A stretch of 63,726 bases of DNA, the filler included, from Reticulomyxa filosa (taxonomy: Eukaryota; Protista; Foraminifera): assembly GCA_000512085.1 (NCBI GenBank). It is 20 parts of 20 records of this genome, joined end to end, with 100 filler letters (N's around TTAATTAATTAA, not from the genome) between each part and the next. Parts side by side here need not be neighbours in the genome. Positions count along the whole stretch, not along the records: positions 37,642 to 54,052 come from ASPP01001397.1; 19 more parts are not named here. One strand, given 5' to 3'. Every line of letters begins with the position of its first letter. The stretch's first letter is position 1. Shown one piece after another: positions 37,642-55,978 of this stretch. The translations under genes were made by a program, and so were the position numbers. Below the pieces are notes generated by a model that searched no databases, was not told the DNA's origin, and saw nothing but the letters and a program-made list of their open reading frames with translations.

Positions 37642-37687
37642 TATGATGATAATTGATTTTCTCCATGAAAAATCAATTATCATCATA
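37642..37687. repeat. Perfect 19-bp inverted repeat at contig start
   Basis: tatgatgataattgatttt-ctccatga-aaaatcaattatcatcata. Confidence 0.85.
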
Positions 37688-37689
37688 GG

Positions 37690-40062
37690 ATATCGTTTTA
37701 GGCGTTCAGTTTTCTTTGCAACCTACTGTAGTACGACAGCTAGTTTTAAATAAAGAGCCAACATCGTTATTAGAAACGGAAAGAGCACTCCAAATGGCTC
37801 AGACTAGATTTGAAGAAGAAAGGATGGTGAAAAGAACATAAATTGTCAAGGGATCAAGAAATCGAGATCAAGAATTCAATGAAAAATTTGAGTTTAGAAA
37901 ACATGGATACATATGAAGTAATATACGTGGGAAGGTACTGGATCATGGATTTAATAATCGAAATAAATACATAAAGCAATACAAAGGAAAAAACATTCCA
38001 GATTATGTAAAAGATATAACTAGAAAAAACGAAAAAAGAAGTTGTAATGACAAATGCTGGAAATGTGGATGGAATTTTGGTCCTATCGAGTTTATTTCCA
38101 AAAAATTTGACAATCATCAACTAAATTGGCATATGTCGGAAAAGTAGCTCTATTCAGTAATTTATGCTGTGCAAAAATTGCGTCACTATTTGCTTCTACA
38201 GTGTATACCGATCACAAAAATTTAGAATCTTTATTTGATGTACGTAGCAAACAGGTAAATAGCATACTTTCACGATGGTCATTACAATTAAGCGAGTTCT
38301 CGTTCGAAGCACGATATTTTTCAGGAACAGAAAATGTAGTAGCAGATTTTTTATCTCGAAATCCTGATGCAATTCCAAAAACGGAACAAATATTGGTATT
38401 TACGCGTACTCAAATACAACAAAATATAAATCAAGAAAATAAATTTTCGAATGAAGATTTAAAGAATCAAATTGAAAAATCATTTGAGTTATCACGTGAA
38501 ATAAGAGATTTTGATCAAATATTTAAAACAGAAACTTTTGTTGAAGCACAAGAAAGTGATAATGTACTAAAATACATTAAGGAAAATTTGTTAAAGCAAA
38601 TATCTGAAGCAATGAATCTTCCTTTACACTGGCATACAGCATGGTATAAAGGAGAATTGGTGGTCGATAGAGTGAACCTGCTTTTACGTGCCGGAAAAGT
38701 AGTTGTTCCGGATCAAATGAAGTGCTTAATTACTTTTATTCTCACGTATTAGTATAACATCCTGGAGCAAAAAGAATGGCCTTATCAGTGAAAGAAAGGT
38801 TATACTGGCCAGAAATGGATAAAGATATAAAAAAATGGTGCAATCAATGTTTTACTTGCCAAACATCAAAAAGAAAATAGATTCAAAGTCTGGCAAATTC
38901 AACACTTTCCAGCAACAGTACCATTCCAGATAGTGGCAATATACATAGTAGGTCCTTTACCTAAAACTGAAGATAGCTATCGCTATGTCATGACAATGAT
39001 GGATCGTTTTACAAGATACGTCGAAGCAGTCCCACTGAAAACGCAATTGGCAAAAGAAATTTCATTAACATTTGTAAGTAAATGGATATTTAGATATAGT
39101 GTGCCTGAAATAATTTTATAGTATAATGCATTGTAATTCAGAGGAAAAATATCAAGTCTCATTGCAGAGATTTTAGGAATGAAGCATCTATTTAAATCAA
39201 TATATCATCATCAAACAAATGGTATGTTAGAAATGTTCCACATATATTTAAAAGAAAGATTAGTCATATTGGTGATAAAAAAGGATTTAGATTTCAGTCA
39301 AGGTGACTCGTTGAACAGTTTTATTCCAGCAATTGTGGCATCATATAATATTACACCGAATCGAATGTCTTTATCAAATCCACATGAATTAGTATATGGA
39401 TCAAGATTTATGTTATCAATCGATATTAAAATGGACCATTTGCGCAAAAACAAAATTTAAAGCCAAGATATGTCAGTATTTAAAAATATTTTGGGAAAAC
39501 AGCTAGAATGTATACGATAATCCGCAAAGATAGCACAATTCCGTTATAACATCAACCGAATACGTTTTGAAAATAAAAATAGTCTTAGTCGTTCATTTGT
39601 AATTGGATACAAAGTACTATTATACATTGGATATCAACGCACCGGGGACAATGCAAAACTACAACCAAAGTTTGTTGGACCTTATAAATTATCGAACAAG
39701 TAGGCCATTCTACAGGAAAAATTGTTTCAGAAAAAGAATTTTTGAAGTTAATACACGTATCAAAGTTGAAAAAATTAGATGCTGGAATCGATGTAACGAC
39801 GAATAAAGGAAATAAAAATCGAGACCCTGGATTCAAGCAAACAGAAACACACCAAAGTGGTCATACAAAAACAACATTAGTGACAAATCAGCTCCAAGTA
39901 TCAGCGCATTCTAAACCTGTATCATCTGAAGAGATTTCGAGAAATGTGAAAGAAATCAAATTGAAGATAATTCGAAGGAAATCGAAACACAAGTTAAAAA
40001 ATTCGTCACCACCCCCTCTGAAACCATTGTCTGAAAACGATGAATTCGTGCCAGAACTGTAA
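37690..40062 (+). mobile_element. Degenerate Ty3/Gypsy LTR retrotransposon remnant (gag remnant, RNase H end, integrase)
   Basis: CWKCG knuckle remnant; TDHKNL...RWSLQLSEFSF...NVVADFLSR; HPG...YWPEMDKDIKKWCNQCFTCQ; IVGPLP...MDRFTRYVEAVPL; QTNGMLE; PKFVGPYK; many stops and frameshifts. Confidence 0.9.
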
Positions 40063-41183
40063 AAACTGGAAAATTTAAATGGATTTGTTTTATGTTTCCT
40101 TGACCAGGCAAGGGTCATAACTGACTCCAGAGTTGTAATAACTCAACTCATAAAATAAAACATTCTTTTTTATCCTCAATTTTCTTGTACGTTTTAGTTT
40201 AGCTTAGCTCTCTTTCTTGCATCTCTCTACAACGTGCTTTCTCGCTCCAGATTCTCTATATGTATAATGCTGCAATTTGAGTATACATTAAATAATCCGC
40301 TTAAATGCAATAAAAAATATTATTCATAATTGTTACTTTTTTTCTGTTAAATGTTTTACCAATAACGCGACAGAAAAATGTAATTTTTTGTTATTGAACT
40401 CACATAAGCAAAAGATTATTGTATTGCGGTAAATAAGTTACTAATTGTTGTACGAAAAAATATTAGTCTTTTAAAAGAAAAAACGTTTTATGTTTGCGCT
40501 TTTGCGTATAAGTAAAAATTATGCAACAAAAAACTTACAACCAACTAACCACATGGTATTTTGCATTTGAAAGGTTTATGCTATGTTTGCATAAACCAAT
40601 TTCGTTTTGTTGTCATTTTCTTACTTACTTGAGCATACTGTGTAATACAGAAACAAAGAAGTAGAAACATTAAAAAAAGCGAATTCATCAAAGATAATAC
40701 GGTGACATTACATTATTATAATATCTAAAAAATGTTTAATATTTAGAATTCTACATCACTGGCAATTTCTAAATACTTCATTTGCTTGTGTAAACAGGAT
40801 AAATTGAAACTGAGTAGCCTTGTTTTACAGGTCAAGCTGTAAAGCGAGAATATAAGCGATATCTTCAAGGAAAATTTGAACAATTTTTGATGTTTAAATT
40901 ATTCAAAATTCAGATCTACGCGAAAAAGATGAACTGAATGCACTAAATACTACAATTGTATTTGGTCACATCCAACTAAATTTATTTTATGAGCAATTAT
41001 ATTTCACGTGATGTTTCTTTTGAATATGATTAGCAACTTGTATTCGTGACTCAGAAGAGCTCTTTGCTAAAAAAGAAGATAATCTTTGATCAGTCGTAAT
41101 AATTCTGTCAGAAATGACTCTATTTTACTTAAAGAAATCCACAAGAACTGTTATACGCAATGAAAAAGCACACAATTTTACAA

Positions 41184-43435
41184 TTAATCTAAAGGTTTGT
41201 GAGCCAAGAAATATTTGAACATTTTCAAGGCTTGAGCTGGTCTCCATTGTGGTACCCTGTAAAAAAAAAAAATCGAGTTTGGGATTTAAATTTGATGATA
41301 ATTGATTTGTGTAACAAAACAAAAAGGTAAAAAGTAAATCCTAAACATGTGCCCTGCTCCTCTGACAGTGACAAAGGATATTTTGGCATAATCTTTGGTC
41401 CAGCCGGCGATTTGGTTATCCAACATCCAAGTGCGATAGTTGTCATCACCATCGACTCCTTGCAAATCATCGACAAACCACTCATCGCCCAAGAAGTTGC
41501 AAGCCAAATCGGTGTCACCATTGTACACAAATGCGTAGACAGTGCTATCCAGCGCAAAGATGTTTTTGTAGACTTGTTCCATAGTGTCATACAAGGTGGT
41601 GTAGTTCAAAATGTCACTGCAAATGGACCATTGCACCGTCAAAGTCGAAGGAATGTGAATGGCCTGTCTCACCGTCATGTTGTTCAAATAAATATCAGCG
41701 CCCGTGCTGTCCACACAAGCCAAATATTTACAACAAAATATATATTGAGTCACAAACATTTACCAAACATGTGCACGCGCGTGCACGTGTTCTCATTAAA
41801 AAGTGTTATACCTGTCAATGCAAGGAACATTTTCTCTATTTAACAATATATGATTAAAGGGGGGAAGGGATCAAAAACATAATGCATGTTAATATATATT
41901 ATAATAAAATAACTTTTCATCAACAAAAGAGATCAATGAAATAATTATGCCTCCCTCTCTCCCCCTTTTTTTTAACTGTAATCTTTGCAAGTAGTTGTTA
42001 TTTGTCTTTTCGTGGAATCTGCGGTGCAACAAGGACATATCTCGGGCATATTTCTTGTGTGAAAAGCCTTGCGTGGTCTGCAAGCAGTCGCCATAAATGT
42101 TATACCAGTTCAGTCCACTGTTGTAAATGGCTTCCATCACAACGGCGTAATCTGCCGCGCAGGCCGGCTTGTCCGAATCGAACGGGCAGTTTTGACGGGT
42201 GTAAGGCGTCTTGCAACAGTTCTCAAGCAGCGAGTTCCACAACTGCTCTGACACTAATCCATGATGATATGCGTACCACACACTGCTATCGTCATTGTCG
42301 GGATAAGATGACAATCCATTTCCAACTTTTTTTTTTTTTTTTTATATCCACTTGTTTACACTTCTTTCCCCTTCCTCCCTTTCTGTGTGAACTTTTCTTG
42401 CTCACCTGCAAATGCTTGCAAATTAATGTGCACTCCTTCATTGTTGGCATTGCCTTGTAAAAGTCTTAACACGAGTGTTGGGACGTATATACCTATAAAA
42501 AAAGGGGGTGGGGGACCAACATTTCAAACACCAAAGTTCAACTGGACAAAAAAAAAAACAAACCTCCGTACGATTCGCCCGTAACATAGAATTTGCGGCC
42601 AACATAATTCTAAGATTGATTGTTATTGTGTGATTGTTGGTTGGAAAATGTATATCACAAAAGACCAACTGGTTGTTCAGTCAAGTTTTGAAGGAAAACA
42701 TACAACAACTATTTCGAGCTGTTTTTCAATTAACTGGAAACTTGTTAAACCAAACCAACAAAGCATGGTAGTTGTCATCTGCCGTGGTGTTGTCGTTCAT
42801 TACGTAAACGCCGTCATTGCTGTTATCACACATTTGGAGGTTATTACATACACACGATTTCAAAAAAAAAAAAAAGGGAGCAAATTAATTATTTCGGCAA
42901 AATATTTTTCGCACAAAAAAAGTCATATGAGTGATATAAAAAAGTGTATCATTACAACCGCCAAACCTGTAGGAAAAGCCGACGCCGATCGGTGCTTCCA
43001 AGTAAATGACATTCGAGTACAGGTTCCACGCGTATGTGTTGTTGTACAAATTGCCTGAGTCGTCGACGTGGATCGGACCGTGTTCGTATAAGAGGCCGTC
43101 CAAAGACGAGCATCCTGGACCACCGTTCACTACGTGTCCCCCCAAAAAAAATACACTTGTGTGAGGACATAGAAACACTGTTTTGTGTATTTTAGGCAAT
43201 ATGCATTCTACTAACTCCACAGTGTCACTGGATCCGTGGCTGGATCGTTTTGCGACTCGAAAAACCAATAGTGCAGATTGTGATGGTTGGACAAAGTCAA
43301 ATAGCCACTGTACATGTTGTACGGAACTGACCACGTAAGTCCTGGCAAATTGGTGATCAAATCTGCCGTCGGGCCACCTTGTGCGGCAGCATAAGAAAAA
43401 AGACCTGCCAAACTTAAAGATAATCCAGCAAGCAT
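41184..43435 (-). CDS. Serine carboxypeptidase, family S10 (cathepsin A-like), multi-exon
   Basis: Signal peptide; YSGYL...[12 protein letters not shown]; [18 protein letters not shown]; FYVTGESYG; [10 protein letters not shown]; TVRGAGHM|[13 protein letters not shown]. Confidence 0.95.
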
Positions 43436-44439
43436 TGTTTTCAGATGGCTAGTACAGATCACAAGAAAAAAAGAAAGAGGAAAAAAGCTTGGAAAACAGT
43501 TTCCCTTCAACTCTTCTGCCACTAAAGTCCTTGCATAAAGTTAGTTATATGCCTTAAAGCATTAGCACAAAAGCGAATCAATCGCTTTTTATGTTTTATA
43601 CAGATTTGTCAATTGAAAACATAAATTCAAATTCAAAGCCACCGATTATTGTATTTTCATTTGGTCGTAATGACAAAATTACGTACAGTGTGGATTTTCC
43701 TGCTGAAAGAGGTGCGCAAACTGTAATACGAAAGGTTTTCGCTCTTTTGAGCAATTTAAAACAAAAGATTAATGATTTAAATAAAAGAGAAAACAAACAA
43801 CAAGATTCAACAAGTGAAAGAGGAAAGACAAGTCGTGAAAGTGAGTATTGTGTTGTTAGAATAAAGGGTTCCAAAGTTCACTTGTAGTGCGAGAACTACT
43901 TATTACGACATCATGAGTACTACATTAGTCACACGATTTTATTCAGATAATTGACGTACTAAACATCGTGTGGTGTACAAATACAATTTGCAATTTAGAT
44001 TTGTTATTAATCGCTGCAGTAATGAAAATAAAAACAGATGCCAAGCAATACTAATTAGAAATTGACGCAGAAAATAAATTATATTACCACCAACATATTT
44101 TCTTTGCCATTTACTGAACTTTTATCTTCTTATAACATAGATGTTGCGATTTTGTAGCAATTATAACATTAACTAAAGATTTTTTTAGTCAGTATTAATC
44201 TACTTTTGCCTATTACACATGACTGAACCCTTATGGAACTTGTTTGTGATTGAATCAACACGAAGAAAAAATTATTTGATTATTCAGCACTGAATTCAAG
44301 TATTAAAGATTAAAGTATTATGTGTCCATTATTTCAATAAGCCTGTTTTCGATTATGTTATGCACGCTTTCTTTTTTTATTCAATGTCAGACAAATATTT
44401 ATTACTAACCACCTAAAACGCCACCTTATATAGAGATCG

Positions 44440-44865
44440 ACTTTCTTCATGAAAAAAGAACATAATTTTTTTAAATATATACAAATCGTGTAGTTTTTAA
44501 ATATCATTTTGGTTTTTTATTAAATCTTTCATAATTATTTAAAAAATTTGAATATTTATTGATTTTTGAAAAATTTTCGAGAAAAAGGTTGACATCTTGA
44601 CTTTGTCGTAACTATGAAATTTGCCAACATTTTTTAAAGTATTTTCAGAAAGTGCTAAATGCGTAATTCTTTTTAAAAAATAAAAATGATTAAGAAACAC
44701 AAAGATCGAACTATGCTTAGCTAAAAAAAAAATAATAAAATAAAGGAAGAAATATTGAAATAATTATTAAATATTTAATAAAAACCAAAAGATATTTAAA
44801 GAATACACGATTTATAGATATTTTAAAAAATTAGGTCTGTATGTTGTTTTTTCATGGAAAATCAA
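44440..44865. mobile_element. MITE-like/fold-back element with about 100-bp imperfect inverted repeats
   Basis: About 44448-44542 (catgaaaaaagaacat...aaatcgtgtagtttttaaatatcattttggttttttattaaat) is an imperfect reverse complement of about 44756-44856. Confidence 0.6.
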
Positions 44866-44879
44866 ACATCAATATAATG

Positions 44880-45355
44880 TACTGTTTTATTTGTCAGCTT
44901 TACTTTGCATTCTACTGTAAATTATCCATTTTTGACATATTTTGATCATCTTCTATGTAAATACATTCACAGTATATACTAGCATTGTATGGAGTATTGA
45001 TCATTCAATATTTGATGGTAATCAATTCATTTGTTCTGGATCAGGATAGTGTGGAGTTTATTTATGGTATATTGATAGCAAAAAATAAGTTCAAATATTA
45101 ATACAACGTTCAGATCCTGTGTATTGTGTGAAATTTTCATCATATTATTATCGTAATAAACGTCGAAAGTCTATTTGTTATTCATCAAACAAAATAATTC
45201 GTGTTTGGGATATTCGATAAAAGAAAAATGAATTATATATTGTTTTAAATTTATATCATTGAAAAAGGAATTTCATTATAATGAATAAAAATCAAATGAT
45301 TGTGTAATTAACTTATGTTATGGTACAGGAAATAGCGTCATATATGCTTGGGTAT
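44880..45355 (+). pseudogene. WD40-repeat family pseudogene
   Basis: NTFTVYTSIVWSIDHSIFDGNQFICSGSG*CGVYLWYID...VYCVKFSSYYY...IIRVWDIR...CVINLCYG; stops and an apparent internal deletion. Confidence 0.8.
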
Positions 45356-45721
45356 AAATATATGGATGAATTTACTACAACTTTGTTAAGTGAAACGACA
45401 TAGATAAAGTTTGTTTTTGATTTCGACTTTCCAATTCATTCATTTTAATATTTTTTTTTTCTTTTAATCAAATCATGGCTGTACAAATTAACGAAATAAG
45501 ATGAACTAAAAAATTTCATGTAAAAGAGTAAATAAGTCTTGACATGAGGAAACATTATTATTCTGCTTCAGCAAACTTGTATATTACTCGGCTCCATAAA
45601 AGCAAATAAAATAGTTTTCATACACAATAATTTTTCAACAAAAGAAAATGCATATTGACCCAAAGAAAAAGTAATATGTATTTCAAAAAAACCAAACAAG
45701 ATACCGGCAAAACAAAAAAAC

Positions 45722-48700
45722 CTACTCTTTTGGCGTTAATAATGTTATGACTTGTTGTGACTTGCCTAAGCGACGAGCCATTTCCAGTGGTGTTTCTCCC
45801 ATCTGTTGTGAACATTTTATTTAATTTTTTTTTAGCCTTTTGAGAAAGTCAAGTTTGTGTGAGCAAGTAAAACAAACTTGATTATTTGTCATCTTCAACA
45901 ATTGTGTCCATATGGTGGCATCAATATGGCTTTGGAGCACCGTCAAGGTATCTTTTTCACTGCGAGAGCGACCTTGCAAACTTAAATGAAGAATGTTATT
46001 TCCATAATCCAAATGATTTTTCTATCGGCACAGACCAGATAACAAACAATAGAAAAAAAATTCACATGAGGGGGAGGGGGGAAGTGAGGAAAAAAAAAAA
46101 AGAAGATAACATTGACAGTAGCTTTCCAAAAAGTTTCATCACTATTCTTTGGAATAAGTGCCAACAAGATCTTCTTATTAATTTCAGATGACATTGTTAT
46201 AGCCCACATCAATGGTGTAAATCCAAGCTAAAGCAAAAAAAAAAAAGAGTGAGTACGTCGAATTGAACAAAAAGTCGAGCTGTTGTATCTTAATTATGTT
46301 TATAGTATTATCGTTGTTGTTGTTGTTGTTGTTGTTGTTAACTTACGGTGTCTGTTGTAGCAAGCATTTTTTGCCACGATTGTACAGGAGCATATTCTTG
46401 CAATGTGGACAAGCGTGTCCATACACGTAATTTCGGATGTTCAAATAAGAGATGCAACAGGGTTTTTCCCATCTAAAGGGAGCATATTTGTATGTAATGT
46501 GTAAGAGATCAAGATTTATACAAAAACAAACAAATAAACAAACAAAATGATCATTGCATCTTTTGTTCCAAAATCCTTCAATGTCGTCGATATTGGTGGG
46601 AATGAGTGCTTTGATAAGATCGCTGTGAAGATCAGAGCGCCACAGCACCGCTTGCATCAAAGGAGTGAAGCCTTGCTATAAGACGAGCATGCAAGTGTGA
46701 GTGAATGCATGTTGCATGTTGCATGTTGCATGTTGCATGAAGAAGAAAGGCCAATATATGTGTCATTCGTTAACATTGGTTTCTTGCGTTTGGATTAAAG
46801 TGTTCCACACGCGATCGTCGGTGATGTACTTTTTCAATAGACCCAGTATCTCTGAGAACGTAATGCGATTATTTCTCACGCCAAAGTCAATGCAAGACAT
46901 TTGATACTATTTTCACAACAATAACAACAATAAAAAGGAGGAGAATGAATAGAGTAAACAAAAGCAAAGAAAGAAACAGTGTTGGTGGAGTGCCAGATGG
47001 TCGGAATAGCGGACGACGACGACGACGACGACGACGACGGAACAAAGAGTTCAATATTGCGAGTGGATGGCTGTTTCCACAGGGCGTACATGAGAGGGAA
47101 GGCGCCCTCTTTGCAAGGAACTAAGAGCTGATGCTGCACGACGTGCTCGGGTATGTAGCGTTTGCTATGCAGCAATTCGTGAGCGCAGTGGAATTGGATG
47201 TCGCTGCTATTGGCCATTTGCGCAACAAAGTTCTTGCCATCGGCGCCGGTGCGCTTGAGAATGAGCTGCGAAGTGGCAAAAGAAGAAGGAAAGAAGAGCA
47301 TAAGTGGAGTGAGTGACGAAACATTGAAACCGGCGAGTTGCAATTGAAAGTCAAAGTGGTTCAATCGAATCTGTTGCAAAGATCCGCGAATGAACTCTTC
47401 TTGACGCGATATCTCATACATTTGATGTTGCTGTTGTTTCCATGACGCCATGGAATCGAGCAAGAACTGCACTTCGCCGACAATGCTTTCGCCGTCATTG
47501 TGAATATATACGATATTTACTTTGATGTCTTTGTATTCGCTTGGAATGGCAATGTTCAATCGACGACTGTAAAGTGCTTGTGTAGACACATCTGCACGAG
47601 GAGTACTCGCTTCGAAACCATTCTTGATACGCATTACATCCAACGTATGACCGAGATATTTGCTTAATTCCTTTTCAAAGTGCAACAGACCATCGCGCAG
47701 ATGCACGATACTGAGGAAATTGACCTGACAGCGCACCACGTCGATAATATGTGCCGACTTGGGAAACTTGCTGTTCCTGTAGTCGACCTGCGCCTTCATC
47801 TTGGAACGCTCGTGACCCTTGATAGGTCCACTCACAAACTTGCAGCCGTGACATCGCGCAAAGATGCCGCGCATGCAATACTGGAACGAGGAGTTCATCT
47901 TATGTGCACGTGTGAGCAGGTGGTGCAGATATATGTCAAAGTCGTACGTATGTTTGGGTTGGAATAACACATCGTCGCTCTTCATTTGAATATGCAATAG
48001 CTCAGTCTCACTCACTGTCGATTGCAGTCCGTCTTCTTGTCTCTCGTCTTGTCGCCAACGCGACTTGTGCGAATATCGCGCGTCAATCTTCACTGACTCC
48101 AATCTCCAATTGCATATCTCCAAAAACTCCTCCTCGTTCCGCTCAATTTCCTCTTTCAACTCCTGTTCAAACTTTTTCATCCCCAGGGTCACTTCGCTAT
48201 CGCAAATCGATTGAACCTGTTTCCAAGGAGTGTTTACCGTTGTTTCATTTGCATGTTTATTTGCATGTTCATTTGCATGTTCAATTGCATGTTCATTTGC
48301 ATGTCATTTGCATGTTGTCTTTCTTCATCTTCTTTCTTTTTCTTCTTTTCTCGTCTGAGTTAACATGCTCGTGAAGCCAAATCAACAACTCACGATTATC
48401 CAATACATATGTTTTCAATCCACTTCCAATCGTTGGGACGACTCGACAGCGTTTGCATGTTCAACAGCTGCTTGCACTTGGCGAACATGACATCGGACAG
48501 TTGGGACGAGTCGTAGAGCCAACACAGGTTGAACACATCGCTGACAATGACCATGCGTTGTTGGATCATGTGCTTCATCGTCCTACACAATGCATCCATC
48601 ACTGTCTTGAACTCGGTCGCACTCGTCTGCTCCTTCAAACATGACATCAGCTGCTCGCTCTTCGATCTCTCTGTCAAATATCTCAGCGCGTACTCTCGCA

Positions 48701-49521
48701 TCGTCTTATCTTTTTCGTCTACGTACATCGAACTCATCAACAGCTTTATCCCGTCCGTGTTTTGCACACGCATCGCTATCTCCAATGCTCCGGTCCACTT
48801 CTCCCTGTTCTCGTCCAGTTTTATCATTCCCGACTCTAACAAGTAGCGCGCACATTTTATGTTGCCCACGCCCCTCACGTGTAACAAATGGGCCAGGATA
48901 TTGTACTGTTATTTGTCCGTTTGTCTACTTATTACATTATATATACATGTATACATATATAACATATATAACATATATGCATATATACATACTGTGAAAC
49001 GCTTATATTTAAATGGTCTCTCAAAATTACTTGCTGCTTGGCATTGTATCTTTCCAAAAGACTTATAAACAATGCCTCGTTTTTTTCCTCTGCAAAATCA
49101 CACGCATACGTCAAAATCAGATCCTTTTTTTTTTTTTTTTTTTTAAGAAATAATAATAATAAATTGTTGTTGGGTGTTCGTTACAATATGTGCGTGTCAC
49201 TTGGCCAAAAAAAAAATAAATAAATAAATACACAACTGATTTTTCTGTCTTGTCCGACAGACTGTCAATCTCGCTGATCCTTCGCATGTATAATGCGTCT
49301 TCGATTTGATTCTCTTTACTCATTTTCGTGTTGCTGTTCACAATGTCCTGAATCACCAAGTTCGGATTGCCATTAGCCTTTTTCAGCTTCTCTTGCAGCT
49401 CTTCTTCACTTAACACGTCTGCAAACAATACTTTCAACGCGTTCAAAGTCTTCAGAGCTTTATCTTGATTTGCTTCTTCTCTCTGTTCTTGTTTTTGTTC
49501 TTGTTCTTTTTCGTTCTCCAT
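45722..49521 (-). CDS. Ankyrin-like repeat protein with a RelA/SpoT-like nucleotidyltransferase domain (multi-exon; apparent frameshifts near 48250-48420)
   Basis: GPIKGHERSKMK...DY...IIDVVRC...MRIKNGF...EYKDIKVNI...GEVQF...HQMYE; ankyrin-like motifs GFTPLMWA, GNNILHL, GETPLEMA; CUE/UBA-like N-terminal helix set. Confidence 0.75.
48243..48316. repeat. Tandem 12-mer (ttcatttgcatg)x~6, encoding EHAN-like repeats on the minus strand
   Basis: Read directly; one unit is 11 nt. Confidence 0.8.
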
Positions 49522-50374
49522 TTTAATTTCAAATTGTGAAAACGCCCTCCCCTCGTTGGCTGTTTCCAAAAAAAAAAACACGCCAGAAACAAGATAGTGA
49601 TCCTAAAAATGGATAATTGCGTAGCTTTAATGTAAAAGACTATATAATTAAACACTTTTTATTTTTATTTTTGATAATTGAAACGCTCTTGTATTACAAC
49701 TTCAGACTTAAATTTCATAAATTGATAACCTTGTGAATTGTATTGTTATTTTTAATCTTTTAAAACTTTTTTTTTGTCTATTTAATATTGAATAATAAAC
49801 TGCAACATTAATCTTAATTGATCCAAAGCCCGACGATTTCATGAAATTTATTATTATATTTCGATAACTGATAAAATTGTAACAAATTGTAATCAAGAAT
49901 GCTCCCTTAAACAAACAACAACACCAAACCAGAAAGTAGATTTTCAATATAAAATTGCTTACTGGTGTATTCAAGTATACTGAAGAAAATTTTTGGAAAT
50001 TTCAGCAAAAATCTGTACATTATTCATATTTTCAAAAGATATCATATAATCGACAAAAAGTTTCTGACCATTTCGAACTAGTAAATTTAATAGGATTCTA
50101 CCTATCTAAGAAAACGTATCCAACTTGCAAATGCCTATGGGAAGATGATTGAAAAAGTTTAAGTCTGACCCTGATCAGAAGTAAACTTTAGCAAGGAAAA
50201 AAAAAAGTGTAGAAGAGTGTCAACAGAAGCAAAATTTGACAAAATGGAAGTAATATATACAGAATGAATAGGGAAGCTTCCTTCAGGATGTCGAAAACTC
50301 TTAGTTCCTTCCCCAAACTTTTTTCACTTAAAAAAAAAATAAATAATTGGATTGATATCAAGTGACAAGAAGAA

Positions 50375-52249
50375 ATGCAAGTAACGGATCGTGATGAGCG
50401 CAAAAAAGCGCTGGATGAAGCAAAGAAAAGGTTGGAGACACGAAAGCGCGAAAGAGAACAATTGCGACAGTTGCGCGACCAGAGAAAGCAAGGACAAACA
50501 GTGAAGCCAAAAGACTACGGGCAAACAATAGTAGCAGAGACGGAGCAGTCGATCAACCGTTGGCAAAAGCCGCCCGAGGAGCCAGTAGTGGCCTCACCAG
50601 CAGCGAATGCGCCAGCAGCACCAGGAAGACGAGTGCAAATGTCGGAAGTGGGGAACATCAACACGCAGGACATTGCAAAGCGTGAGAAAGAGACATACGA
50701 AAAGGGTGTGGCAACAGATGCGATCGAGATTGCACAAGACGCGGAGATCATATCGGAGAATGCAAAGGAAGAGGAATTGGAAGCAATGTTGCGAGAGTTT
50801 ATGTCGGAGAAGATTAAGCCATGGCCACCCAAGTCAAAGCAGCAACAACAGCAACAAGGATCAAGCGCGAGCAAAGAAAAAGATGAGCATTTGGAACAAG
50901 TGATCGACTTATCAGTGGAAGACGATATCGCGGATAATAGCAACGCAGTGAGCGAGACAGTGTTGACGAATGAGGCGGTGGAGACGCTGTGGTCGTCGAA
51001 GGACTTCCAACAGTCGTTTACGATCAAGACGCGATGGATGGAGCGCTGCTTGGGTGTGAACGATGAACACAGCCTATTTTGGGAATTGGACGAGGATCGA
51101 GGTGGCAAAGACAAGGAGGACCAGCAGGAGTCGTTGAAACTGAAACAAGAGTTTGTCATTAGCGAATGGAACAAAAATGCGAATAATCGAAGAGCCGTGT
51201 GCGACTTGGACTGCTCGAATTTAAATCCCGATCTTTTTTTAACCAGCTATGCCAGTAATGACAATCTGGTCGGGTCGCCCAATGGCACTGTCGCCGTGTG
51301 GAACTTTATGCTGCCTAACAAACCTGAATACTTGCTGGAATCCCAGTCCATGGTCACTGTCGCCAAGTTCCATCCTATCAATGCCTTTATCATTTTGGGC
51401 GCTACCATGAGTGGACAGATTTTGGCTTGGGATGTCCGTGCGAAATCAACTCCGCAATTTCGATCGCGAAGTGGCCATTCCTCCCCGGTGTATTCTTTGC
51501 AGTTCTTACCCACTCATCATCGCAAAATGCTGCCGTTTTTGACTGTTTCCAACGACGGCAAAATTTGCAATTGGAATGAGGAAATACTGGTGGAGCCCCA
51601 GTCTCAATCCACTATCAAAACCAAAGAAAACAGACCCGATGAAATCCCCACCACTTGCTTCTCTTTTCCTTTGAAAGATTCCAAGGCTGTTATTCTCGGG
51701 TGCGACGAAGGACATTTGTACAAATGCGATATCCTTTTGCAGAACAAAGAACTGCCCGTTGATCACAAAATCGATGAGGCACACTTTGGCCCCATTACAA
51801 ATGTTGAATTTCATCCACCAGCTAAAAAAGCTGGAAGACACATGGACATGCTATTCTTGACCAGCTCTTACGATTGGACTGTGAAATTGTGGCACTTGGG
51901 AAAGAACAAACCTTCTGAGGTCGCCTTGTTCCGCGATATGCAAGACTATGTGTACGACGTGAAATGGAGTCCTTCTCATCCCGCCGTATTCGCTTGTGGC
52001 GATGGCAGTGGCAAAATCACTTTGTTCGATCTCAACTATGACTTTGAATCACCTGTCAATGAACCCTTCCAGTCCTCTCCCAATGGATCCATATCCAAAA
52101 TATGCTTTGCCAAAGAAGGTAAGAATTTGTTGGCGGGTGACAGTCAGGGAGTCGTTCGACTTTACGACGTAAGCTCAAATCTTCATGATGCTTCAGAAGA
52201 AGATTTCAGAACTTTTGAGGAAGCTATTCAACGTCGAATACCTAAGTAG
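50375..52249 (+). CDS. Cytoplasmic dynein intermediate chain (WD40)
   Basis: N-terminal coiled coil, ETYEKGVAT light-chain-binding-like motif, WD40 repeats AHFGPIT...FLTSSYDWTVKLW, DYVYDVKWSPSHPAVFACGDGSG. Confidence 0.92.
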   Translation: MQVTDRDERKKALDEAKKRLETRKREREQLRQLRDQRKQGQTVKPKDYGQTIVAETEQSINRWQKPPEEPVVASPAANAPAAPGRRVQMSEVGNINTQDIAKREKETYEKGVATDAIEIAQDAEIISENAKEEELEAMLREFMSEKIKPWPPKSKQQQQQQGSSASKEKDEHLEQVIDLSVEDDIADNSNAVSETVLTNEAVETLWSSKDFQQSFTIKTRWMERCLGVNDEHSLFWELDEDRGGKDKEDQQESLKLKQEFVISEWNKNANNRRAVCDLDCSNLNPDLFLTSYASNDNLVGSPNGTVAVWNFMLPNKPEYLLESQSMVTVAKFHPINAFIILGATMSGQILAWDVRAKSTPQFRSRSGHSSPVYSLQFLPTHHRKMLPFLTVSNDGKICNWNEEILVEPQSQSTIKTKENRPDEIPTTCFSFPLKDSKAVILGCDEGHLYKCDILLQNKELPVDHKIDEAHFGPITNVEFHPPAKKAGRHMDMLFLTSSYDWTVKLWHLGKNKPSEVALFRDMQDYVYDVKWSPSHPAVFACGDGSGKITLFDLNYDFESPVNEPFQSSPNGSISKICFAKEGKNLLAGDSQGVVRLYDVSSNLHDASEEDFRTFEEAIQRRIPK

Positions 52250-52902
52250 GAAAATAGATTTCTCCTCCCTACAAAATCCCCTTTAACAAACAAAACACAT
52301 TTTTATATTTCAGCTCTCTTTTCAATTTTTGTTTTTTTTTTAACAAAAATGTATAAAATTTTGACTTGCGGTTTTTGAGGATCCACACAATTCATTCAAT
52401 TTGCTGTGCTTAAATGTGCACAAAAATATTTGAAGAGATCAGTAACTCGTCCACAACGGTTGCTAATACCCTTCATTTTTATTTGTTTTTTTTTTTATAA
52501 TTTTTTTGCTTCACGACAAGAAAATGTCAATGTGGTTATTCTGTCCGCTAATACCTTTTGCTGCATTAAATGCTCACCAAAACAAGAACTAGATCCAAGA
52601 GCTGAATCCGCCCCCCCTCCTTAAATACAAAATATTCTATTTTGTTTTGAAATGCGTGCATGAATTGTCACAAACAGCGATTTTGCGTATGGTTTTTTGT
52701 TTTTTTTGCACCTTGAAATTTTCAGCAAAATTCAGAAAAACTCAGATAATAAAAAAATGCACTGCATTTTATTTAAGTTTTTAAAAATTCCTTTCCAGTT
52801 AATTTTTCAAACATAAATTGGGTACCGTTAAAAATACCAAACATTTTTTATTGAAATAATAGAGAAAGAAAAAGGAAAAAAACAACAGCACCATGTTGTT
52901 TT

Positions 52903-53985
52903 TCAGTTTTGTATATGTTGGAGTTTTCTTCGCTTGACGACATTTCCACTGTGATCAGAATCGTGGACGTGAGCAACCAATTTCATGTGCCCGGCTTTGG
53001 CGCAATTGCCAATTTGACATCCAAAATAAAATACCCCTGGTTTTATTGCTTTCCACAGGTAACTGTATTTATCACAGCCCGTTAACTGTTCACCTTGAGC
53101 AAAGTCATTGTTTAAATAAGCAGTTTGGTTTTTAAACAACCAAATATTGCGAGTATATTTCCATTGAAAATGAATTTGATCATTGACATTAATATCCAAA
53201 GGTTCCATTGCTTGATCGCGGAAACACCAATCAATATCGATCGTTTCCCCAATTTCTTCCTCTGTTTTTTTTGCTCCATTTCCTTTGTTGCTATCGTCAT
53301 TTGTATTAACAACCGGCGTTTTTTCCACAAGCAACTGCGACGCACTTTTGTTTTCGTTTATTGCCCGTTGGATATATAGCATTGTAGATTGCATGTTATT
53401 GTTATTGTTATTACTATTGATTAAAGGACGGTTCGTGTTTGGATCATTTGATAGCCGAGAGTTGGGCGTAGGAATAGTTGTAGTCGCAGTTACAGACGTA
53501 GTTGCATTCGACTCGGGGCCCTTTCGTTTTCTCTTGTTACGTAACTTGCGTGCTTTGGGCAATTCGGTGATATCTTTGGGAAGGACGACGGCTTCAGTAT
53601 ATAGTTCAAAAGATCTGGCCAAAGATGGCTTGGGAGCGAAATTGCCAGCAGTGGTTGTGGACACCTCTTGGCTCGGAAAAGAGGGTGGTTTGGGAAAAGG
53701 TTTGGCGGTGGTCCCAGTTTGCGGGGTATCTTTCAAAGCGCAAATGAGATTGTGCAAGTCCATTCGTTGGCGCAAGTTGTGAATATATAGGCCTTGGTCC
53801 AAATCTTTTAAGGTCAGCGAAACAAGCAGATCTCCGGTGATTTCGTTTCTGGCAAATGTATCGGCGTACTGTGTAAATTTCCCGCTGTCGACAGAGGAGA
53901 TCCAAGCTTTTACCATTTCACAAGACCATTGAGTCACACTTGGCACTTCATTTGTTTGAGTCTTTTCATCGGTTTCCTTAGCCAT
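52903..53985 (-). CDS. SAM-domain protein with a C-terminal cupredoxin/phytocyanin-like domain
   Basis: SAM: WSCEMVKAWI...YADTFARNEITGDLLVSLTLKDL. C-terminus: INVNDQIHFQW...NIW...PGVFYFGCQIGNCAKAGHMKL. Confidence 0.8.
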   Translation of the reverse strand: MAKETDEKTQTNEVPSVTQWSCEMVKAWISSVDSGKFTQYADTFARNEITGDLLVSLTLKDLDQGLYIHNLRQRMDLHNLICALKDTPQTGTTAKPFPKPPSFPSQEVSTTTAGNFAPKPSLARSFELYTEAVVLPKDITELPKARKLRNKRKRKGPESNATTSVTATTTIPTPNSRLSNDPNTNRPLINSNNNNNNMQSTMLYIQRAINENKSASQLLVEKTPVVNTNDDSNKGNGAKKTEEEIGETIDIDWCFRDQAMEPLDINVNDQIHFQWKYTRNIWLFKNQTAYLNNDFAQGEQLTGCDKYSYLWKAIKPGVFYFGCQIGNCAKAGHMKLVAHVHDSDHSGNVVKRRKLQHIQN

Positions 53986-55978
53986 GCTTTCTTGTTTTAA
54001 TACTTCCTTTTTTTCTTTTTCTTTTTTTCTCTTTCTTTTTCTTTTTCTTCTTNNNNNNNNNNNNNNNNNNNNNNNNNNNNNNNNNNNNNNNNNNNNTTAA
54101 TTAATTAANNNNNNNNNNNNNNNNNNNNNNNNNNNNNNNNNNNNNNNNNNNNTCACCAAGACAGCAATATTTGCTTCAACATTTATGTGCATCCTCTTCT
54201 TCTCCATTTACGGCTCCACTATCCGCACCACCTATGGAATTAGCGTATTCTAGTTTTGTAAAAACAACAAACAATAAATTACTTCAAATTGTTCAGAAAA
54301 AAAGACAAAAAATAATCAATGTTTCTTTTAACTTAATGCTCTTTCAAAGGTATTCGAATAAACAAAGCAAATCATTTCCTGCGATAACCACAGTTTTTTA
54401 CATCGAAAAAATAATCCAATCGACAATCAAATTGCAATAATATTTCCACCAAATCAATACGAAAGCCGTATCAATTGTACCTTGGAAATACTTCATTGCA
54501 TCATTGGTGTGTCGATATCTGGAGTCAAATACGCATTATCATAAATACATGCAAAAGGGGTTACTAATATTTGATCGAATTATATGCATTGATGAATTGG
54601 AGTGAATAGTGAAAGTAATGCGTGCCGATCTGAGGATTGTAAACACATAACAATCACAATATCGTCCACACTCAACGTCTTGGTGAAACGGATTTATTAT
54701 GTCGATTTCCTTTATTCACATTATCTTTTGCCTCACTCGATAAGTTCACAATTCTTGCACGATTTATTGTTAGTATACTTCTTGATATAATCCATATGCC
54801 ACGATACCATTGGTCCGCAGTTTTGCTTCTTTCTTTCTCTTTTTTTTCACTTCTCTTAATATACTCTTCCTTTTCTTTCATTACAAAACCTACAATTAAA
54901 TGATCTACGTTCACATTGTTTTAGTCGAAACATTTCACAACAACTGAAAATATGATAAAAAATAACATATACCTTCAAATGAAGCTGCTGTCATGATAAA
55001 ATATTCAATAATTCCAATTCACGATTCAGACCTTGATTATTCATCCAAGACATAGTCAGCAATGTATACGTGTTAAATGCCAATTCTGCTTTGGACAAAT
55101 TGTTACATCTTCACGGTTCACTTGAACAATTTTTTTTTATTGTTTCAGTCGACACCCACATGACTAACGCATCAACTAGGATATTATTCAAAAAGAAATG
55201 TATTCACTCTGGTAAATGCTTATTCCGAACATACTCCAATTGATTGACCTTTTTTCTCCATTTGATTGCGAGATTGACCATGTGGAACTTGACTTTGTAT
55301 CATTTCAATATTGCATCTCGGAGGTAAGGTTCAATTTATAAGCATCTAAATGTCAATTTGTAGCATTTCATCGACTTGAAAGTAAAAAGCATTAACATTA
55401 TATAATACTTGTTTGACCTTGCACAGCCTGTCTAGAGTAGATAACACAAAACTCCTTAGATAATCGATGGCCAATTTGAGGGTTTATGTCTGCACGCTAT
55501 AAACAAATTTGCGGACGTAATGGAATTGAAGACTACTTTGAATAACAATGTTGATGGCAATGATAGAATGGATATTGCACCAATCATGTCCAAAGGAAAT
55601 GGAATAGGATCGAATTGCAAATGTACCAATGGAAGTTAGCAATCATTGGATATCGACTCTTAAGATTGCTCTAAATATCATATCGCAATTGACGCATTTG
55701 CAATTGGATGCCAATGNNNNNNNNNNNNNNNNNNNNNNNNNNNNNNNNNNNNNNNNNNNNTTAATTAATTAANNNNNNNNNNNNNNNNNNNNNNNNNNNN
55801 NNNNNNNNNNNNNNNNGCGACCTGCCGCAAATCGGCAGCGAAGCATCCACCGATGGCAAGCCCGGCAGCTGAGCGCCATTGAAGCCCAGACCATCCCGCC
55901 GTGACGCCGTCTTGCGCGAAGGCCGCAATGCCGGGAATATCGAATGCCTTTCAGGGCTATTCGGAGAATTCCAGGCAC

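Follow-up and report, generated by a model that had tools for sequence, protein, structure and literature searches.

Alarmone synthetases of the RelA/SpoT homologue (RSH) type serve bacterial and plastid signalling, and their toxin relatives kill cells either through (p)ppApp synthesis or through a block on tRNA. Tas1 (Apk1), a type VI effector of Pseudomonas aeruginosa (PDB 6ox6), is a proven and very active (p)ppApp synthetase (PMC11782079, PMC12691689), and SaEAS, an exported protein of Streptomyces albidoflavus (PDB 8vx3) that its authors liken to the Apk1 toxin domain, makes both (p)ppApp and (p)ppGpp; the 1,369 Apk1/Tas1 homologues surveyed alongside it are confined to bacteria, and the string 'eukaryot' is absent from the main text of that survey (PMC12691689). 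In CapRel, an RSH-fold effector is restrained by an attached trigger-sensing domain (PMC11782079). Among eukaryotic members, an RSH survey lists only the plastid RSHs, Mesh1, and a few divergent small alarmone synthetases (SASs) in fungi, Dictyostelium, and diatoms, with ankyrin repeats unmentioned (PMC3153485). Here we describe a gene of Reticulomyxa filosa, a non-photosynthetic foraminiferan (Rhizaria), as a first-pass annotation of the same DNA had stated. The gene lies at 45722-49521 on the minus strand of a 63,726-nucleotide stretch of DNA joined from 20 parts of assembly GCA_000512085.1 (the window), within positions 37642-54052, which are one whole 16,411-bp contig (ASPP01001397.1). The explanation that we hold best, with moderate confidence, is that it codes for a cytosolic protein of ~1,025 aa in which a predicted RSH-fold domain of ~190-230 aa, located between ankyrin-like repeats, would be an active pyrophosphokinase.

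Predicted fold and its closest structural matches

Modelled by AlphaFold from 131 relatives and with no templates, the domain reaches a predicted local distance difference test (pLDDT) score of 89 and a predicted template modeling (pTM) score of 0.81. Its elements follow the order helix, beta1, helix, beta2, helix, beta3, loop, beta4, beta5, helix, which is the order in RSH synthetase domains, and the model contains the five-stranded mixed sheet framed by helices that defines the synthetase fold. The first model, built from seven sequences (pLDDT 68), already returned RSH synthetases as its only matches. With Foldseek, the top 50 PDB hits are all synthetase domains of RelP, RelQ, SaEAS, Tas1, Rel, or SpoT (E 1e-7 to 9e-4). 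VIA-align gives Z scores of 13.9 for SaEAS (8vx3), 13.3 for RelQ, 12.2 for RelP, 10.9 for CapRel and Rel, and 10.5 for Tas1, with 135-160 residues of RSH synthetases superposed at ~3 Å. A Foldseek-independent search of 48,161 representative PDB chains places RSH synthetases at ranks 1-8 (Z 13.1-9.9), followed by other nucleotidyltransferase-fold proteins (TdT, Z 9.3; CdnE, 8.7). A shape search of the ESM-Atlas returns a cluster of the Pfam RelA_SpoT family (PF04607; TM 0.54/0.66) beside eukaryotic clusters fused to ankyrin (ANK) or tetratricopeptide (TPR) repeats. SaEAS is the best structural match overall (Z 13.1-13.9), and together with Tas1 it has the highest sequence identities among the structural matches, 18-19%. 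RelQ and RelP (SAS1 and SAS2 of Firmicutes) follow in fold at Z 11.4-13.3, over ~150 residues at ~3 Å, and the toxSAS enzymes CapRel and FaRel2, which are tRNA 3'-CCA pyrophosphokinases, at Z 10.6-10.9. The synthetase fold proposed in the first-pass annotation is thus the one predicted, with RSH synthetases ranked best in three structure searches, and we consider it very probable that the modelled domain has the RSH fold.

Such a fold could also carry out another reaction, namely nucleotidyl transfer, in the form of AMPylation, RNA tailing, or oligonucleotide synthesis. Pol-beta-type nucleotidyltransferases (Pol lambda and mu, TdT, CdnE, and TUTases) match the model as well, at Z 8-10.7, and several RSH substrate-binding residues are replaced in the family. 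However, RSH synthetases score higher, occupying the top eight ranks, and Pol lambda and mu (Z ≤10.7) align over ~105 residues rather than ~150. Classical nucleotidyltransferases have a G[GS]...DxD pattern, which is absent from the family; like RSH enzymes, its members have one Asp at beta2 and an ExQ on beta5, and they have in common the donor motif of Tas1 described below. We consider nucleotidyl transfer improbable.

Active-site residues and candidate chemistry

The first-pass annotation drew attention to seven motifs, from GPIK to HQMYE. All are present in the large exon (47404-47829, minus strand), in a 438-aa open reading frame (ORF) at 46876-48192: GPIKGHERSKMK at 47829-47794, DY at 47784-47779, IIDVVRC around the Asp at 47742-47740, RIKNGF around the Asn at 47622-47620, EYKDIKVN around the Tyr at 47535-47533, GEVQF around the Glu at 47475-47473, and HQMYE from 47427. 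The series is more than a chance resemblance, because these positions are invariant or nearly so (≥90%) across the 131 relatives. The donor-phosphate motif (Table 1) has spacing identical to that of Tas1 P282..Y297, and the distances from Glu to Met to His in the last motif are the same as in RSH enzymes.

Residue roles were transferred from the RelP and FaRel2 structures, in which the Mg2+ ligands are D107/E174 and D90/E145, respectively, and the arginines stacking on the donor adenine are R78/R112 and R64/R95 (PMC5794853, PMC11782079). The counterparts of the two metal ligands are D82 and E171, present in 100% and 99% of the 131 sequences; conservation of this Asp and Glu was one of the points on which the first reading had been staked beforehand, and both are kept. 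The triphosphate lysines Lys80 and Lys88 correspond to K56 (98%) and K64 (100%), the ribose His190 to H187 (95%), the acceptor-stacking Tyr of the G-loop to Y151 (95%), and the Gln of ExQ to Q173 (92%); Y190 of HxxYK is also kept. The likeness to RelQ and RelP therefore takes in the Mg2+ Asp and Glu, the two lysines at the triphosphate, the His at the ribose, and the Tyr of the G-loop (roles as in PMC5794853). Other positions have changed. RelP Ser84 is replaced by Arg60, GYxSxH by YxDIK, and EIQIRT by EVQFLL, in line with the altered acceptor side noted at first reading, and a variable insert of ~25 aa precedes beta4; these changes, the arginine substitutions discussed below, and the lack of a PF04607 match set the family apart from RelQ and RelP, and nothing points to a homotetramer or to a pppGpp allosteric site in it. 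Pro54 (94%) and Arg60 (97%) are near-constant, and the conserved residues particular to the family are Arg60, Arg85, Cys86, Arg119, Lys155, Lys183, and Arg194. The window copy keeps 23 of the 23 family-conserved polar residues.

Members share only ~30% identity, and yet more than 20 polar residues are conserved at 92-100%. Because these residues are near-invariant at such divergence, we favor, with some reserve, the view that the domain is an active Mg2+-dependent pyrophosphokinase, as judged from its residues. In this scheme a nucleoside triphosphate, probably ATP, would donate its beta,gamma-pyrophosphate to the 3'-OH of an acceptor that stacks on Tyr151, and the acceptor would be either an adenine nucleotide, for a product of the (p)ppApp type, or the 3' end of an RNA. 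By analogy with Tas1, either of these is more likely than GDP or GTP, since the first synthetase motif (Syn1) resembles that of Tas1 and the motifs on the guanine side have changed.

Several observations weigh against an active RSH-type enzyme. The structure is a prediction, and the residue equivalences rest on profile alignment and secondary-structure register. No curated model of Pfam, NCBIfam, or PADLOC recognises the domain in the window protein or in 11-131 relatives. The window protein matches neither PF04607 nor an NCBIfam RSH model at E≤1, and PF04607 matches none of the 131 family members at E≤10 and none of 53 full-length relatives at E≤1e-3, so membership of the curated RelA_SpoT family, a check proposed in the first-pass annotation, is not borne out. 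When the 131-sequence family alignment is compared by hhalign with an RSH profile of 16 sequences (plasmid-borne RelQ/RelP-like, long RSH, and 'RelA/SpoT domain' genes, plus E. coli RelA), the match is weak (P 0.055, score 18.4); with shuffled columns the score is 12.4 ± 2.5, and the real value is reached in 4 of 100 such controls. Both adenine-stacking arginines of RelP and FaRel2 are replaced, R78/R64 by Pro54 and R112/R95 by Gln87 (Ser in most relatives), and GPIK is consequently not the equivalent of GRxK that it was first taken to be. EIQIRT has LL in place of its 'RT', and an invariant Asn122 stands where 'DYI' has its Asp. Finally, the window copy itself has two frame breaks, and its intactness may be in question.

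Some of these points are tempered by others. The hhalign alignment spans 111 columns and keeps all synthetase motifs in register. A search of all PDB sequences (177,635 distinct) with the 131-sequence profile yields three matches at E≤10, one of which is Tas1; this match is weak (E 0.72 over 26 residues), but the family's motif P-x-K-x3-R-x3-K-x3-D-Y is found unaltered at Tas1 residues 275-300. RSH-fold chains are, by rough estimate, a very small fraction of the distinct PDB sequences, and for this reason the match provides modest independent support and a pointer to the Tas1/Apk1 branch. Loss of the first arginine is no argument against catalysis, as Tas1 has the same Pro/Arg variant and is very active, and a conserved Arg85 stands two residues before the Gln87 column; Arg60 and Arg85 are the candidates for taking the place of the missing arginine clamp. 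The other sequence searches were blank or uninformative: hhalign against E. coli RelA alone gave nothing, nor did phmmer or hmmsearch against PDB sequences for the window protein or small profiles; a homologue search from E. coli RelA recovered only near-identical enterobacterial RelA; tblastn of the domain against plasmids gave no match; and pattern scans of 185,579 prokaryotic genomes and of viral contigs, a weak blank as they used one or two short patterns, found no relatives. Weak matches to UfSP_MPN_N (PF22084), seen in 10 of the 131 members with E no better than 0.0017, were regarded as spurious. Statistically significant sequence homology to RSH is not established, and the profile-level signal is weak.

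Were the RelA/SpoT resemblance due to chance, the domain would be unrelated to these enzymes, and sequence statistics alone, not being significant, would allow this. However, three independent structure searches rank RSH synthetases first, the motif order is identical, and so are several spacings (K-x3-[SR]-x3-K and E-x-Q-x5-M-x7-H), which makes coincidence a most unlikely account. A catalytically dead nucleotide-binding or scaffold module would fit the loss of the adenine clamp and the blindness of curated models to the domain. Against this, polar conservation of the kind described above, with both metal ligands included, is typical of active enzymes, and Tas1 is highly active without the same Arg (PMC11782079); a dead module thus has, in our judgment, little probability. 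The preferred reading remains an active pyrophosphokinase.

Family distribution, architecture, and putative role

When 1.84 billion representative sequences are searched with a profile built on seven R. filosa paralogues, at least 1,000 proteins match with E≤1e-3, and E≤1e-10 is reached by 503. They constitute a real, large, and divergent family of RSH-fold, Tas1/SAS-like protist domains that is outside Pfam. Of 30 relatives looked up, every one with a source name is foraminiferal (Reticulomyxa, Nonionella stella, and Bolivina argentea), and the remainder are from European Nucleotide Archive (ENA) metagenome assemblies, the two contigs examined being from one Tara Oceans sample. Clusters labelled as ciliate or diatom, and one fused to TPRs, are also among the ESM-Atlas neighbors. 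A quick maximum-likelihood tree places the window copy in a 20-sequence clade (support 99) that includes all nine known Reticulomyxa copies, and the Nonionella copies in other clades; because copies cluster by species, the family has expanded separately in each lineage. Full-text literature searches, which covered few subscription journals, found nothing on protist RSH-ankyrin fusions or foraminiferal alarmone enzymes, so a prior mention is possible.

Strong ankyrin-repeat matches are present in 35 of the 53 full-length relatives scanned, and single relatives have WD40 or RCC1 propellers. In the window protein, ankyrin-like repeats flank the domain on both sides, as first described. The window's own exons give only sub-threshold matches (Ank_2, 17 bits; Ank/Ank_3, 12-14 bits, E 0.07-0.2), but the colinear segments of paralogues pass the Pfam gathering score on both sides (P0002 63-109, 34 bits; P0004 352-438, Ank_2, 28.6 bits), and P0030 has an ankyrin match of 35 bits, also above the cut-off. 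The C-side piece in exon 3, which includes GAFPLMYALWKQ, has no Pfam match of its own. P0002 is named 'Ras guanine nucleotide exchange factor, partial' at its source, a name without support, as Pfam finds only ankyrin repeats in this paralogue. We note that the linker between the N-side repeats and the domain, which is conserved in paralogues, weakly matches Atx10homo_assoc (PF09759, E 0.004, below the cut-off) over residues 45-93 of the piece at 48411-48905 on the minus strand.

The N-terminus begins MENEKEQEQKQEQREE (MENEKEQEQK...). No signal or transit peptide is seen by direct reading, since this sequence is acidic, in agreement with the first-pass annotation. The CUE/UBA-like character also assigned to it fares less well: neither CUE (PF02845) nor UBA is matched in Pfam at E≤10, and what is left is a language-model lead in which the nearest named Atlas clusters of the N-terminal exon are CUE, HBS1_N, and UBA_SDE5 at 0.77-0.78, below the reliable level. 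No HD hydrolase domain, likewise reported as missing, was found in the gene, on the contig, or among the 53 relatives.

These features invite comparison with the described systems. Like Tas1 and SaEAS, the foraminiferal proteins have a single catalytic domain attached to other modules, and with Tas1 they share the donor motif in its exact spacing and the predicted fold. In contrast to both, they are eukaryotic, the genes contain introns, the partners are ankyrin-like repeats and not domains for secretion or delivery, no immunity gene or hydrolase is seen beside the window gene, and sequence similarity is sub-significant. The parallel with CapRel is conceptual, an RSH-fold effector with an attached sensor (PMC11782079), the sensor being putative in the foraminiferal protein; it would be formed by ankyrin repeats and not by a pseudo-zinc-finger domain, and the donor-site arginines that are engaged by the antitoxin elements of CapRel and FaRel2 are absent from the foraminiferal family. 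The divergent eukaryotic SASs (divRel) of fungi, Dictyostelium, and diatoms and the plastid RSH1-4 (PMC3153485) are also eukaryotic proteins with RSH synthetase domains, some without a partner hydrolase, but those are found by RSH profile models and the foraminiferal family is not, and the latter is repeat-fused and greatly expanded in Foraminifera.

The flanking repeats might bind a partner or trigger and so gate the enzyme, as the sensor domain of CapRel does. This role in signalling or defense is suggested by the architecture and the lineage-specific expansion, and the full reading with gating included is tentative. Equally speculative is its extension to a general picture, in which Foraminifera, and probably other protists, would have a large undescribed family of cytosolic enzymes with ankyrin, TPR, or WD40 sensors, derived from or related to Tas1-type toxins, that upon triggering make hyperphosphorylated adenine nucleotides or pyrophosphorylate RNA ends. 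If true, RSH-type chemistry would extend to the eukaryotic cytosol in a non-photosynthetic protist lineage, protists would offer a testable candidate for a nucleotide messenger or an effector of cell death, and eukaryotes would have an alarmone-type system for signalling or cell suicide, in analogy to bacterial CapRel. For annotation, hundreds of 'hypothetical' foraminiferal proteins that are invisible to standard profiles acquire a name and a hypothesis through the family.

We also note that on a Tara Oceans scaffold (L017, 1075-12003) a 1,642-aa family member adjoins an ankyrin-repeat protein of 2,238 aa that is encoded on the same strand, and on a second contig (L018) an ankyrin-repeat gene is directly upstream of a family member. 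These may reflect clustering of such genes or split gene calls.

Gene model, frame breaks, and neighboring genes

Three-frame reading together with splice-site inspection resolves the gene into nine exons with ~1,025 codons (Table 1), and its ends agree with the limits of 45722 and 49521 first assigned. The eight introns are 71-119 nt long, all GT..AG and all in phase 0, with a G+C fraction of 0.22-0.40 compared with ~0.45 in the exons. The best database match is the window's own product, P0001 (434 aa), which spans only the part of exon 3 downstream of the frame breaks; its close relatives are all R. filosa proteins, at 37-46% identity. Searched one by one (BLASTP against the paralogues, and Pfam), exons 2-8 each match R. 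filosa paralogues colinearly, most clearly the 1,036-aa P0017 (RFI_15807); exon 1 has no BLASTP match among the paralogues. A by-eye match of exon 2 to P0012 was rejected, as BLASTP gave it no support. Simple repeats in the gene include two perfect arrays (at 47012-47039 and 46313-46339), one a (GAC)9 on the plus strand that is read as nine consecutive Ser in exon 3 and the other a (GTT)9 within intron 6, as well as a 20-A run (minus strand) at 49125-49144, immediately before the intron 1 acceptor.

Table 1. Features of the RSH-like/ankyrin gene, in window coordinates
Feature	Position	Strand	Description
Exon 1	49521-49237	-	ATG at 49521, GT donor; acidic N-terminus, then possible UBA/CUE-like helical segment
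Exon 2	49123-48989	-	45 codons; GT..AG; BLASTP to P0011 91-117, E 1e-6
Exon 3 (large)	48905-46978	-	N-side ankyrin-like region, conserved linker, RSH-like domain, C-side ankyrin-like repeats
N-side ankyrin-like repeats	48720-48869	-	Ank_2 E 0.0085, 17 bits, below cut-off
Frame break 1	48405-48415 (~48410)	-	One base too many within 'gaaaaca'
Frame break 2	48296-48303	-	Inside a 12-nt tandem repeat
Predicted RSH-fold (small-alarmone-synthetase-like) domain	47302-47985	-	228 aa as modelled (AlphaFold2)
Donor-phosphate motif G-P54-I-K56-x3-R60-x3-K64-x3-D68-Y69	47779-47829	-	Aligns with GRxKxxxSxxxK of RelP/FaRel2
D82, R85, C86, Q87	47725-47742	-	D82 invariant; aligns with RelP Mg2+ ligand Asp107
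Acceptor loop Y151-K-D153-I-K155-V-N157	47515-47535	-	Aligns with GYxSxH; Tyr kept, Ser to Asp, His to Lys
E171-V-Q173-F-L-L...M179...H187...Y190...R194	47404-47475	-	Aligns with EIQIRT..M..H..YK
C-side ankyrin-like repeats in exon 3	46978-47301	-	Aligns to P0004 352-438
Exon 4	46906-46775	-	BLASTP to five Reticulomyxa paralogues, E 2e-10 to 2e-6
Exon 5	46675-46544	-	One ankyrin-like repeat (QGFTPLMQAV...); P0004 461-503, E 7e-13; Ank/Ank_3 E 0.07
Exon 6	46472-46347	-	BLASTP to P0017 866-905, E 1e-7
Exon 7	46227-46111	-	One ankyrin-like repeat (LGFTPLMWAI...); BLASTP to P0004 and P0142; Ank E 0.22
Exon 8	46021-45878	-	BLASTP to P0017 986-1021, E 9e-6
Exon 9	45802-45722	-	Last ankyrin-like repeat (MGETPLEMARRLG...); stop codon 45724-45722

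The apparent frameshifts reported near 48250-48420 are real in the assembly. Both are +1, lie within ~115 nt of each other, and are upstream of the RSH-like domain. At the first, '...NDWKWIEN' resumes as YVLDNRELLIWL one base later in the next frame, where P0002 reads NDWQWLSEYMVEDRNLLIWL unbroken, and the piece downstream aligns to P0002 216-237 and P0012 179-201. The second is within a tandem repeat at 48244-48316, in which Tandem Repeats Finder (TRF) counts 6.2 copies with 3% indels and a first copy one base short. The stretch between the two breaks is homologous coding sequence. A short intron was considered as the cause of either break and rejected: the only GT..AG candidates are 18 nt and 21 nt long, of which the first leaves the frame unchanged and loses conserved residues, and the second would delete a conserved Trp. 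The breaks may be assembly errors or recent decay.

The window copy could accordingly be a pseudogene, with two real frameshifts severing the N-terminal third from the catalytic part, in a family that may otherwise be functional. Two +1 breaks so close together are consistent with this, as are the uninterrupted passage of the paralogues P0002, P0010, P0011, and P0017 through the same region and the restriction of the database protein to the 434-aa ORF 3' of the breaks. However, both breaks are in error-prone contexts (an A-run and the 12-nt tandem repeat), the remainder is open in all nine exons with all eight splice sites canonical, the segment between the breaks is still recognisable as coding, and the family-conserved residues are all retained, 23 in number. 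We regard a pseudogene as a possibility of some substance, though less likely than not.

The contig carries several other coding sequences. At 50375-52249 on the plus strand, divergently transcribed relative to the RSH-like/ankyrin gene, a single 624-aa ORF combines an N-terminal half that is charged and rich in Gln with a WD40 propeller at its C-terminus (E 2e-17). Three ORF pieces at 41225-43334 on the minus strand match successive parts of PF00450 (E 1e-28, 2e-7, and 2e-23) and, by these matches, are a multi-exon serine carboxypeptidase S10 gene, upstream on the contig. A 360-aa ORF at 52903-53985 on the minus strand has an N-terminal SAM domain (SAM_1, E 2e-7). An ORF at 38126-38752 on the plus strand weakly matches a reverse-transcriptase RNase H-like domain (PF17917, E 9e-5, just under the cut-off) and is probably a retroelement remnant.

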